A stretch of 64,000 bases of DNA from assembly GCA_977016875.1 (NCBI GenBank), contig CDRNST010000217.1, positions 992,001-1,056,000 on the forward strand, in the 5' to 3' direction. Below the pieces are notes generated by a model. It saw only the letters and a list, made by a program, of their open reading frames with translations. It was not told the DNA's origin and searched no databases. This stretch comes from Pavona decussata. Lineage: Eukaryota. The position numbers and the translations under genes were made by a program. Below are positions 54,087-60,395 of the stretch, piece by piece (the stretch's first letter is position 1; each line of letters begins with the position of its first letter).

Positions 54087-54882
54087 CTTATAAATGCTGT
54101 AAATAACAGTCAGAGGACCGTTTTGGGAGAAAATAGCACGGATATGTTGTTCCTATAACCTAAAATCCAGAAAGAGAGCCGAGGAGTACTAGGAACAAGA
54201 AACGGCAAATCCAATATGGCGGAAGGTCACAGGTTGTGTTTATTTACATGAAATGTAAGGCATCATTCAACTGAACCTCTTCTAACGCAATGGACTAATT
54301 CCGATAACTGAATTTTATGCCGGCTAGCTCCTAGCTGACTACGGAGTTGAAGCCGTAAATATTTTTGTCTTGAATAAATTTATACGAAGTCATATACTAT
54401 CCTTATAGTTTTAAATTTTCCTTTCTATGCTCTTTAGTTATCGAGGAAATTGTTAGCTTTCGTTTAAGAGAGTGCGCTTAGAGCATCATTTTTAAGGCCT
54501 GAAGCGATGATCTTATCAATGATCTTAAACGACCTTACCTGGTATAAACAGATATCCGAACAATGTGACGAATTGACGATTCGAGGAATTGACGAATTGA
54601 CGACAATTGACGAATTCATGAAATTAAATGTGCTAAGGGACCGGTCATTATTTATCGCCTGAAGGGGAAGGGGAGGGGGAGGGGGGGGGGGGGGGAGTCG
54701 GAGTATTTTTGTTTTCACATCGGAGCATTTACCTGATCCCCCGTAGAGTATCTAGTTTTTTAAAGATCCCCCCTTATTGGTAGTGAAAAGTTTCATGTCC
54801 CCCCCCCCCCCCCTTTCTCCCAGCCACCGCCAAATAACTTTTTGAATATGCAAGTGATATCTTTAATAGTGGTACTTACGTC

Positions 54883-56327
54883 TCACGGACCTTGAACAAC
54901 AACGGTAGATATTTGCTCGTCAGATACGCACTGAATTGTCGTGGAAGAGCCAATCTCAGGCTGTTCATCCAAATCCACGAAAACATGGTCATCGTCGCTC
55001 TCTGCCTCTTCACTTTCGGATTTTTCATCCTCGGATTCCACGTCATCTTCATTACTCGACAGTTCTTCTGTTATCACAGTCTCTTTATTCTGTCGGTTAT
55101 AGTGACATCGAATGGCCTTAACTTTGTCACGTTTCCGACCCACAGTCGTCAAACCATGCTTGTTGAGATACAGGTCCAGTTCTCTTACTCGCAACTTTTT
55201 AACTTTGCCACCCTCGATGAGGTTATCCCATTGAAAGTCCTTGTACGTTCGTTCGGCTTCTTGCCTTCTTCGCTCCTCAGCTGCTCTTGTTCTCATGTCT
55301 TTTCGGATCTCAACATCCTTCAAAGGATTAACATATGCAATGACGTGCTTCTCTTCCACAATAGATTTTGAGCAGAAGCTCTTCATGGCATCCTGATCGT
55401 TTCTGATACTGTCAGAATGTTTCTCGTACAGATATTTAATACATTTTCTAAGAAGGTAATCATCTGGTGTCCTGCCCGTCGATTCCGTCTGATAGATATC
55501 TATGAAATGTCCAGGATTGTTTGAGTCTGGTACAGGTTGCGGAATTCTTTCCGTTTCTGGACCGACCCATCTATTGTTAGAACACCAGGAACAGAGATTG
55601 GAACTTTCTTCTCTTGACTCTTTACAGGCATCACGACAGAATTCCATAAAAAGTTCTCCACGAATATAGTGGTCTTCCATAAACGATTCGATCTTTCGGA
55701 AGTATGCTGCACCGGGCGCTTGCTCTTTGTTTCGTTCTGATGCACCCCGATAGTTGTCGAGGTAAACAGAATTGAAAAAGAATAATTCATCAGGGGACTC
55801 GCTTACTTTGTTCTTGATGTAATCTTTAAGGACAGGGGCATCATCAATTCTCTCGGCTACCTGACTACAGACATACCAGGCATTTTTCTCCATCCGTTTC
55901 TTTTCGTACTCTTCGCATGACTGGAGAGACAGTTGCTTGATTTCCTCTTCTGATAGATCCTCAAACCTCCTATATTTTTCCCACTCTAGGGTTGCGCCAA
56001 CCACAAGAGCATCAGAAATTGCCGAGTTTGTCCTTTCGGCTTCACCTTGCCCGCTGTTGCCCCTCGAACGATGACATCGCACTCTCTAATCGGAATTGTG
56101 AACCCTTGCTAACTCGGCGTCTCGAAATCTAACTTCGTAGTTGGAAACTCCGACGCCCGGACCAGCATCTGAAAGGTCAGCCCATCGTGGCTTTACAGGT
56201 GGAAGGCAGAGATCTCCGAGAACTTCTAAACCATGTTTACATGAACTGGTTACCCTTAAAATCCTGTTCTTTCTCGCATCTTTTTCCATTGAATCGACTT
56301 CCTCTTTAAACAGATCATCAATGGCAT
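54883..56327 (-). pseudogene. Putative DDE transposase (Zator-like) C-terminal exon with SAP-like motif
   Basis: SDAGPG...HRSRGNSGQGEAERTNS resembles the D-x-G-P ... S-x-x-N-x-x-E-R catalytic blocks; LRVRELDLYLNKHGLTTVGRKRDKVKAI is SAP-like; internal TAG at 56086-56088. Confidence 0.6.
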
Positions 56328-56344
56328 CTAAAATAACGCTCAAA

Positions 56345-57303: not shown

Positions 57304-58359
57304 AACGCTCAAATTAATTATAAAGTAGCGAGATTCGTTTGAGTTTGGATTTTGGCAACTGTTTTCTCTACAAGTTCCGTTACTTTATAACGCCGCGTTA
57401 ATTTTCTTCATCAGTTTGAAATTAAAAAACACACCTATCGCATTATTTATTTTATTAGAAAGTATTTTTCCTTCACTTTGCGATAATTTAAATCGCGTCA
57501 ATTGCTAGTAAGTCCGCTGGTTTATAGTCTGCATTTGACGCACGCACGAGGGAGCCCCCACATTTTTTTTTTCGCTCGCTTCGCTGCGTCACGTTCTACA
57601 TTTCCGTTTTAATTTAATTGTATTAATTGTAAGCATAGTTAAATATTTGACACTGTTATTTACCTCTGATCTGCAAATTATAGCGTTGTCTTTCAGATAC
57701 CGGGAATAACCCTATCTAAATTATAGTGAACACAAATACCAGGATTTGCAGTCTTTAAATACAAAGAATTAATGTCCGCGTCGTTTCGATGTTTCAGTGT
57801 TAATGATTACTTGTACTATTGCATGCATATTTTATTGTTTTATTTCTCACCAGTTTGAGCGTAAAATAATGGACCAGTATCACGAAGAAATTGCCGCGTT
57901 TTCCTTCATGATGATTTTAGTAATATCGAAACGTCAGACAACATTTACTAGCTTTTATATTTTTACGAAGACTGCAAAGCCATCATTTATTTACCTGGTC
58001 ATTGTCGATATCTGATACAAGCCGCTCAGTTCTCGCCCTTCGCTCGCTTCGCTTTTCATTATGGCATCGTTTATGGGTACTTACATCACTTAAATCCAAA
58101 TGCTTTCCAAGCTGATCACCATTATCGTCCAGATTGCTAAGCTTTTCTGTCATATCTTCCATTCTTGCTCAATTACAATGTCTGAAGTCCAACTGTCAGG
58201 AAATCTTCTCAGCGCGCTTATTAAATAATGCTTTGTTGTTGTGACGTACTATTAACTAACATCGTTGTGACATATTAACTTTAACTTTATTTTTTACCTA
58301 TTAACATATAAAACCTACCTTTAGCCGAAACGTGGGCACAGAACTCGTTTAATTTTTCA

Positions 58360-59832
58360 ATGGATAAAGAAATTGACTATATTTTAACAAAAGCTGACTT
58401 GAGCAATTACACAGACAATTTTAAACAAATTGGCGTTGCAAAGGTCGAGCATTTCCTGGACGTTGATGACGAAACTCTTGAGCGAGACATTGGACTAACG
58501 AAGATACAAATTCGCCGTCTGAGGCGTTTCTTCGCTCAGATACAAGGCGAATCAAAGCAAAGAGGAACAAGCAGTGAAGGTATTGAGTTATCGTTTCTTA
58601 GATGGTTATTTTGAAGGCCTCTATAAAGTAATTGGCTTGTGCTTCAAACCAGCCATGAACAAAAAACGTAAGGCAACATGGTGCATAATTTGTAACGCAA
58701 TCCTTAACAAACATTTATAATGTGATCGGTAGGTGTTACGTCCGCCAGTGCTCCCAAGAAGCGCAAGCAGGCGATTTTGTCATTTGGACGCTCCGGGCAG
58801 CTACAAGTCCTGAGGAACGACTCAGCACCAGAAAAGAAGCCGTGGGAAAAATATCTCCTTCCCAACCCACACACAGAAAGGCTGAAATTCTACAATAGTG
58901 TTGTACCGCAGATTTATGAATCTTCATTCGTGAGTAAACAAGCCGGTTTCAAACAGTATCTCCTCGAGCAACAGCAAATGCGTTGGCAGTTAAACACAAA
59001 GATAAAAGCCCTTTCCGATAAAGAAAACAACTTGCTTAGAAACGAGAATTGGGGAGTGTGCCAAAACATCACGAAGTTCATGTCAGGCGTGGATGGATGT
59101 AAGGGCAGTGGTGATGTCGCGAAGTGTGAGTCCTCCTTGACCACTGTCAATGAGGCCTTTAATTCAGCATCCGATTTGCTCTCATTTATCGACAACAGAC
59201 GAAAGAACCTTTTTACAGAAGAGCATACCTTAAGGCCGTTTGCAAGTGATGAGCTCAAATATTTCCAGGAAGCTCAAGAGCGAGAGAAGGCCTTACACCA
59301 AGAGCTGCAGAAAGCCTCCAATGCGCTCACGACCACCCTCATGAGCTTGAAGAGAAAGTTCCCATCTTCCATGGGGAACAACGGCCTATCCCGAAGAAAA
59401 AAAGAAAACAAGAGAAAAGTGAAAAAAAATCAATGAGAAAAGGTTACGTCATCTAGCAGCAATTCTCCTAGAAAAACTTACCTCAAAAGAGGTAGCTAAA
59501 GAGGTTTTCGATTCACTCGAAAAGAATACTTACAAATGTGTCTCAAGTATTAATGCAGGATTCACTGCGAGATTTGTCAAGCGTCTCCACCTGGATCCTC
59601 TGCTATGGCTTTTGGAAAGAGGCGTGTTGAAACAGAGCTGGCACGCAATTTGAAAGTGGTAGCTATAGTGGCCAGAATGAACGAAGATAATAGCAGTAAT
59701 GGTGCTGAAAGAGGGTCAAGTTCGGGCGAGGATTCCGATGAATCTGACGTGGAGACTGTGCAAGAGCCAGTGGAGAGGGCTGCCGAAGATTCTGACACGG
59801 AAGCGGAACAAGATACAGCCTCACCAAAATAA
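58360..59832 (+). pseudogene. Transposon accessory gene: SAM domain, NLS, coiled-coil/basic region, acidic tail (intron 58580-58732)
   Basis: LTKADLSNYTDNFKQIGV...FLDVDDETLERDIGLTKIQIRRL is SAM-like; phase-1 GT-AG splice joins in frame to ORF 58777 via APKKRK; frameshift in the A-run near 59425 and another near 59620. Confidence 0.6.
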
Positions 59833-60395
59833 ACACTTTTTTATTTGTTGTTTTCATTCGGCCGCGTATTAAAATAATGAACGTTTATGATTTTAGATTA
59901 CGATTCTCTATAAAACAAACTGAAACGTCATGAAACAATTTTGAGCAATTGTAAGTATTCCATTCTCAAAATCTTGATAACCTTTCTAATTTCAATAGAT
60001 CGTGCCTGATTAACAACGTGTATGTTAGACTACGATAGTGATACTTTTTTTACAAAATGGAGGGTCTGTAAAAGGGTTTGGGTTTTGTGTCTGGGCTAGA
60101 ATAAAGTTTATATAATACAAAATACAACTGAACGTGGTCTTGAATATATGGTTGGGGGTTTAGAGTCCTAGCGGCAAATCCTAACAGAGTATTTACAAAT
60201 GCACTCACCCGGGGTCCCGGCGCGACCTAAAATTCCTTTTTTTTTTTGTTTTTGGTCTGATCCCCCCCCCATTATGCTTGTCAATTACGGCTGATTCCCC
60301 CTAAAGGTCTTCAAAAAACCATGTGATCTCCCCCTAAATACTCCGACGACCCCCCCCCCCCCCCTCCCCCCAGGCGATAAATAATGACCGGTCCC

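Follow-up and report, generated by a model that had tools for sequence, protein, structure and literature searches.

A defective copy of a two-gene DNA transposon in Pavona decussata, and the SAM-domain protein that probably partners its transposase

What kind of element occupies positions 54637-60395 of a 64,000-nucleotide stretch of Pavona decussata DNA (contig CDRNST010000217.1, positions 992,001 to 1,056,000 of the forward strand; the whole stretch is hereafter the window), and does it still have what it needs to move? A first-pass annotation, made from the letters of the window, had read the locus as a Zator-like transposon with two genes arranged head to head, a transposase-like gene on the minus strand and an accessory gene encoding a SAM domain on the plus strand. 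We found that the element is a defective, non-autonomous copy of a DNA transposon. It is probably the dead and rearranged remnant of a small, recently active family of two-gene cut-and-paste elements in which the SAM protein acts as a cofactor of transposition. The autonomous form of this family is ~7.2 kb long and carries two divergent genes, one for the transposase and the other for its SAM partner.

The outer limits of the element and the sequences next to them are as follows.

54634-54636, no strand: left target site duplication, TAA, present as a single TAA at the empty sites L165 and L166
54637-54661, plus strand: left terminal inverted repeat, 25 bp and perfect, with an imperfect extension through a G-run and GGAGTATTT to ~54708
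54730-54830, plus strand: subterminal region on the left, in which GATC(C)n motifs stand ~32 bp apart
60230-60345, plus strand: subterminal region on the right, whose GATC(C)n motifs are partly mutated in the window copy
60371-60395, minus strand: right terminal inverted repeat, 25 bp and perfect
60396-60398, no strand: right target site duplication, TAA

The two ends are exact reverse complements of each other over 25 bp (GGGACCGGTCATTATTTATCGCCTG) and are flanked by TAA on either side, as the first-pass annotation had reported. With up to two mismatches allowed, the 25-mer matched the 602-Mb genome at 45 places, 24 of them forward and 21 in reverse, and its reversed control matched none, so the recurrence of this end is not due to chance. 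About 22 elements in the genome carry the end sequence, some of which are diverged subfamilies; TAA or TTA borders five other copies, and TTA also borders two of the diverged lineages described below. The boundaries and the 3-bp duplication were fixed by two empty paralogous sites on contig C351 (L165 and L166), in which the left and right flanks abut and share exactly one TAA. In full copies of the element the inverted repeat is longer, ~44 bp with a single mismatch, and the G-run behind it is common to the element and its diverged lineages. The motif GATCCCCC occurs five times in the 7.2 kb of the full copy L031 against ~0.2 expected; all five occurrences lie within ~120 bp of an end at a spacing of ~32 bp, none is internal, and their orientation is the same, on the plus strand, at both ends.

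The first-pass annotation had also stated that the element interrupts the frame of a long interspersed nuclear element (LINE), which rejoins when the insertion is removed. A minus-strand frame across the flanks was indeed restored after removal of the element and one TAA. The host sequence around the element has no long open reading frame (ORF) and no Pfam match, and its left flank has only three copies in the genome, on which grounds the description of the flank as a demonstrable LINE was dropped.

Comparison with other copies showed that the interior of the window copy has been rebuilt. In a whole-genome search, element positions 1-1698 and 2657-5759 matched about a dozen copies at 93-98% and positions 1708-2658 matched copies of other repeats only (on C233, C38, C185 and others). 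In the alignment to L031, window positions 54689-56334 correspond to L031 251-1903 and positions 57293-60356 to L031 4362-7427. The genes and the inserted piece are arranged in the window as follows.

54883-56334, minus strand: what is left of the transposase (residues 647-1129 of 1129), at 94% identity to the intact L031 protein
56335-57292, plus strand: foreign 958-bp filler from another interspersed repeat, replacing 2,458 bp (L031 1904-4361)
57995-58162, minus strand: candidate transposase 5' exon of 56 codons, starting MEDMTEKLS, with a GTAAAT donor
58163-58359, no strand: spacer of 197 bp between the divergent start codons, a putative two-way promoter judging from the layout
58360-58579, plus strand: accessory exon 1, the SAM domain, 220 nt, ending AAG before GTATTG, phase 1 (SAM_TNK 6.3e-10, SAM_2 3.7e-5)
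58733-59832, plus strand: accessory exon 2, with PKKRK, long helices, a basic RRKKENKRKVKK patch, an HLDPLLWLLE unit and an acidic tail

Because the foreign piece took the place of 2,458 bp, the first 646 residues of the transposase are gone from this copy, and the candidate 5' exon is orphaned since its acceptor was deleted as well. The remnant retains D702, E746, a Cys/His cluster, a homeodomain-like three-helix unit, the SAP domain and the acidic tail, and is interrupted by an in-frame TAG at 56083-56085. Two frameshifts, an insertion (+1) at 59422 and a deletion (-1) at 59627, disable accessory exon 2 as well. The foreign filler, the truncated transposase, the in-frame stop and the accessory frameshifts ruled out an autonomous window copy, and the earlier description of the stretch as a complete two-gene element had to be given up. 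The filler itself belongs to a separate repeat with at least 15 further copies at 84-95% identity; it carries a YIDD-containing ORF that resembles a reverse transcriptase motif by eye and has no Pfam match.

Intact members of the family were found elsewhere in the genome. Four full copies (L031-L034) of 6.9-7.2 kb have the same ends as the window copy and are 98.5-99.4% identical among themselves, the window copy being 96-97% identical to them. The transposase frame is uninterrupted in four copies and the accessory frame in six, and short derivatives of 2.4-2.8 kb combine identical ends with the tails of both genes only. Given how closely the intact copies agree, their sequences suggest that the family has been active recently or is still active. 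L031 also includes a 37-nt stretch (L031:4210-4246; absent from the window copy) with the near-palindrome GGATAGCGTTATCC, at which the summed contig depth in four RNA libraries was 550-1,540 against ~10-25 across the rest of the element. This stretch is present in many contigs with unrelated flanks; it could mark where a small, abundant element ends, or be a motif that is commonly transcribed.

The minus-strand gene of L031 has an intact ORF of 1,129 residues. The candidate 56-codon exon lies 1.2 kb upstream of this main ORF, a CAG acceptor stands ahead of the ORF and the phases match; the joined product would reach ~1,189 residues, the length of the relatives in Nematostella, Ptychodera and Branchiostoma. 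Conservation of the exon among copies is 96-98%, and the diverged lineage L037 matches it weakly (E 0.024). A profile search with the transposase returned 4,588 relatives (representatives of clusters at 50% identity, E ≤0.001), the best 150 of which were inspected, and the named sources included corals, a sea anemone, an acorn worm, amphioxus, mussels, a loach and a spider. Judged by these sequence matches, the transposase family occurs widely among animals, and Pfam has no model for it. When the transposase and 34 of its relatives were scanned against Pfam and NCBIfam, SAP and PHD domains alone were detected and no transposase model matched. A sequence search against solved structures found only the SAP domain of Ku70, a protein-atlas search gave only unnamed clusters with scores below 0.9, and a core-only profile search for distant short relatives found only family members among the matches listed. 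Foldseek returned nothing at E ≤0.001 for the transposase and accessory models.

The nature of the enzyme was read from an AlphaFold model of residues 330-1000, built with 47 sequences (predicted local distance difference test score, pLDDT, 85; predicted template modelling score, pTM, 0.83). The model contains an RNase H-like core in which D444/D445 end strand 1, D702 follows strand 4 and E746 opens a helix, the arrangement of a DDE (Asp-Asp-Glu) fold, and these residues are invariant across 35-47 sequences. A four-helix bundle (approximately residues 560-690) is inserted between helix 1 and strand 4 of the model. Downstream of the core, the alignment has a nearly invariant H868/C883/C894/C897 cluster, and a homeodomain-like three-helix unit at ~940-992 superposes on engrailed with a root-mean-square deviation of 1.1 Å over 50 residues. 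The modelled fold thus identifies the product of this gene as a DDE transposase with an RNase H-like core.

The tail of the transposase is a SAP domain with an acidic tail behind it, which bears out the SAP-like tail proposed in the first-pass annotation. The family profile matched the C-terminal SAP domain of Ku70 at 7.4e-8, and PF02037 (SAP) was detected in 12 of 35 family members (best 3.3e-7). Unlike in Ku70, the SAP domain is joined to a transposase in the coral family, where its presumed role is DNA or chromatin binding. Separately, two loci (C30:87321-88412 and C65:2007329-2008420) hold uninterrupted 464-residue frames that are 40% identical to transposase residues 17-392 only; from their sequences they may be a gene in their own right or an N-terminal part that has been domesticated.

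The exon encoding the SAM domain is on the plus strand, at a distance of 197 bp from the candidate transposase ATG at 58162; the domain scored 39.4 bits against SAM_TNK (cut-off 25) and 24.2 against SAM_2 (cut-off 20.5) in the window and matched SAM_TNK at 2.6e-9 in L031. The accessory exons were searched one by one. Exon 2 follows CGGTAG, reads G-VTSASAPKKRKQAILSFGRS and reaches a stop ~360 codons on, with PKKRK placed behind the phase-1 intron. We concluded that SAM domain and body make up one protein on the strength of three independent observations: two gene models join them, P0126 of Oculina patagonica, with its splice precisely at the SAM/body junction, and the RefSeq model P0152 of Montipora foliosa, which comprises SAM_TNK, a linker and the body (26% identical), with a phase-1 intron at the matching position; a single exon of the lineage L041 contains the last SAM helix and the body; and the metagenome contig L170 carries SAM and body in one 299-residue ORF. 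The AlphaFold model of exon 2 (pLDDT 76) has four long helices (72-102, 125-157, 171-208 and 212-248) together with a small helical unit and an acidic tail that is disordered. Motifs conserved in the accessory protein are PWEKY..P.P.T.R.KFYN, the basic patch and HLDPLLWLLEKGVF; the body has no significant sequence match among solved structures. In L041 (C33), the accessory gene seems to hold two tandem SAM domains, each split by an intron.

Whether such a gene belongs to the element depends on its company elsewhere. In four diverged lineages of the same genome, SAM and body lie upstream of the transposase on the opposite strand. The transposase of L037 (C49) is 63-75% identical to that of L031 and its 25-bp end is almost unchanged. 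Those of L038 (C144; 40-44%) and L041 (38%) belong to elements with GG-starting inverted ends followed by a G-run and with a TTA duplication, and L039 (C6; 41%) has ends like those of L038, the left one being truncated. In other samples, with transposases 31-50% identical, SAM and/or body was detected in 11 of the 18 informative contigs, defined as those in which the sequence upstream of the transposase start is 0.8 kb or longer. Every one of these matches was upstream of the transposase and on the opposite strand, and Pfam independently called SAM in 7 of the 11 positive contigs. Since the gene keeps its place and orientation in the four lineages and in these contigs, a one-off capture was ruled out, and the proposal of a genuine partner withstood the test that could have overturned it.

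The pattern of substitution between L031 and L037 points the same way. The ratio of nonsynonymous to synonymous substitution rates (dN/dS) was 0.06 for the transposase and 0.35 for the SAM exon. For the accessory body, the proportion of nonsynonymous differences (pN) was 0.28 and synonymous sites were saturated (proportion of differences, pS, 0.80), and outside the genes only the end aligned. Both genes are under purifying selection.

Selection and a fixed position show that the SAM gene is important, not what it does, and the gene might instead be a long-standing passenger or regulator, such as a brake on transposition or a decoy that diverts silencing by the host, that is dispensable for cutting and joining. 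Two of the results that weigh against a cofactor role suit such a passenger. Some lineages appear to be without the gene: L040, which has an intact transposase frame of 1,177 residues, has no partner within 5.8 kb upstream, and no partner was detected in 7 of the 18 informative contigs; limits of detection may play a part in these absences. The accessory body, moreover, has no recognisable DNA-binding or Myb-like fold and resembles generic helical bundles only (Z <13). Against a passenger, the head-to-head position is fixed across lineages whose transposases are only 31-50% identical, and the nuclear signal and basic patch suit a direct part in the reaction. We regard a dispensable passenger as unlikely.

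The remaining points against the cofactor reading concern expression and gene structure. Four RNA libraries, one from each of four studies, gave contigs that span the entire element at ≥93% likeness and run through both predicted introns and the spacer, with no splice joint reported; such contigs cannot show strand or rare spliced forms, and may derive from DNA carry-over or unprocessed RNA. Of the spliced gene that the first-pass annotation had placed about 200 bp from the transposase, with SAM, PKKRK and a coiled-coil/basic region, the SAM match, the distance and the PKKRK signal stood, while the splice joints found no counterpart in RNA. Its proposed transposase first exon fared similarly: the frame joins in L031 and is kept among copies, but it is not conserved in distant relatives, and for that reason the exon remains a candidate. 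The link between the transposase and the SAM protein is a putative one.

If the SAM protein is a cofactor, as we favour, transposition might proceed as follows. The transposase would bind the conserved ends through its helix-turn-helix and SAP parts, cut both ends and insert at TWA with a 3-bp stagger, which would produce the TAA/TTA duplications. The SAM protein would enter the nucleus by its PKKRK signal and self-associate through the SAM domain and helices, bridging transposase molecules. It may attach to the subterminal GATC(C)n arrays as well, may aid the pairing of ends and may help nuclear import, a role that would be analogous to that of the Myb-like protein of PIF/Harbinger. The 197-bp spacer would drive both genes.

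PIF/Harbinger elements are indeed the closest model for how the coral element might act. A TWA duplication, GG-starting ends and two genes are hallmarks of PIF/Harbinger, and the coral element shares all three, with a non-catalytic and presumably nuclear partner as its second gene. By eye, its D-[AS]-G and E-R motifs are also loosely like those of IS5/PIF enzymes. The element could accordingly be imagined as a far-diverged PIF/Harbinger type in which the Myb/SANT partner was swapped for a SAM protein. However, no match to DDE_Tnp_4 or Plant_tran at E ≤1 was found in the 35 family members, whereas DDE_Tnp_4 is clearly matched at least 150 times in this genome, and the partner consists of SAM and long helices in place of a Myb-like fold. 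The coral transposase is also more than twice as long as that of PIF/Harbinger and has the four-helix insert and the SAP tail. A canonical PIF/Harbinger element was thereby rejected, and we hold even a far-diverged one to be very improbable.

The label 'Zator-like' was examined against ISAzo13/TP36, to which Zator is related; Zator also groups with the IS630-Tc1-mariner enzymes (PMC10045372, PMC7386202, PMC5718144). Both Zator and ISAzo13 make 3-bp duplications (PMC10045372). The comparison set consisted of 35 ISAzo13 proteins obtained from bacterial genomes by a short-pattern search, five of which matched PF07592 at 1e-115 to 1e-137. Aligning the family with this set by hhalign gave E 0.13-0.2 at a probability below 1%, and HMMER was not significant in either direction. 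With the comparison confined to the D-to-E segments, the residues D, SN, H, G, S, N and E were colinear with ISAzo13, again without significance, and the D-to-E spacing was 44 residues in the family against 43 in ISAzo13. PF07592 matched none of the 35 family members and was not found in the genome, NCBIfam gave no match either, and tblastn of the transposase core against plasmids retrieved no ISAzo13 gene. These results do not demonstrate the label.

The sole pointers to Zator are the 3-bp duplication, the near-equal spacing and the colinear motifs, to which the structural comparison adds a mariner-like core fold. Among the top structural matches of the transposase model, the only transposases were the mariner-type Mos1 and Metnase, with which Zator has been grouped (PMC7386202); they aligned over the whole catalytic domain (175-193 residues) at Z 7.2-7.8, middling scores in searches dominated by helical bundles, which indicate a shared fold and not membership. 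Although this is the closest solved transposase fold, integrases scored about equally (Z 7.4-7.5) over fewer aligned residues. Mariner elements have a TA duplication and one gene, and the 3-bp TAA/TTA duplication of the coral element is not that of Tc1/mariner.

The same evidence leaves room for a different assignment, in which the element is a member of the Zator superfamily and its two-gene form a Zator lineage, possibly one already in Repbase, in which case its annotation alone would be new. The likenesses in duplication, spacing, motif order and fold favour it; the failure of the profile, family-model and plasmid searches speaks against it, as does the size of the coral protein, ~1,130-1,190 residues against ~400 in ISAzo13 or about three times as long, which includes the large helical insert, the homeodomain-like unit and the SAP domain. 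Zator is described as encoding one protein, and the coral family has two genes. We rate outright membership of Zator as a serious possibility that falls somewhat short of an even chance; the transposase family may be a deep relative of Zator/ISAzo13.

Two-component DNA transposons are rare, and PIF/Harbinger is the textbook case, whose partner explains nuclear import and end recognition. The literature searched, which did not extend to the founding Zator paper, Repbase or Dfam, contained no paper that links DNA transposons to a SAM or SAP domain. The SAM partner is an unusual feature of a real, widespread and unannotated family. A bolder and more tentative proposal is that the family represents a two-component DDE group across animals, either outside the named superfamilies or a deep, unrecognised branch of Zator, with an obligatory SAM-domain helical protein, which would be a cofactor of a new kind, and with near-identical intact coral copies that may still be mobile. 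If a SAM-based partner is confirmed, it would be a second and unrelated one, meaning that transposases recruited helper proteins more than once, and the element would offer a new system for studying the pairing of ends.

Genes of this family are present in public annotations under other names. Four such entries (P0008, P0317, P0152 and P0094) bear names that include 'Transient receptor potential cation channel subfamily A member 1' (TRPA1), 'phosphatidylinositol 4-phosphate 5-kinase-like' (PIP5K-like) and 'RNA-directed DNA polymerase from transposon X-element'. Because a family of more than 4,500 clusters lacks a Pfam model and bears the names of host genes, a proper description would clean up many animal annotations.

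Two further observations concern the distribution of the family. Transposase fragments P0007, P0008, P0009 and P0295 are 96-99% identical to the family described here and come from Pocillopora meandrina, Stylophora pistillata and Porites lobata; such near-identity in corals of two distant lineages suggests, on sequence grounds, either recent horizontal transfer or cross-contamination of assemblies. Within the window itself, tblastn matched the accessory protein (residues 202-290) to positions 46293-46526 on the plus strand, at 37% identity and E 2.8e-6.

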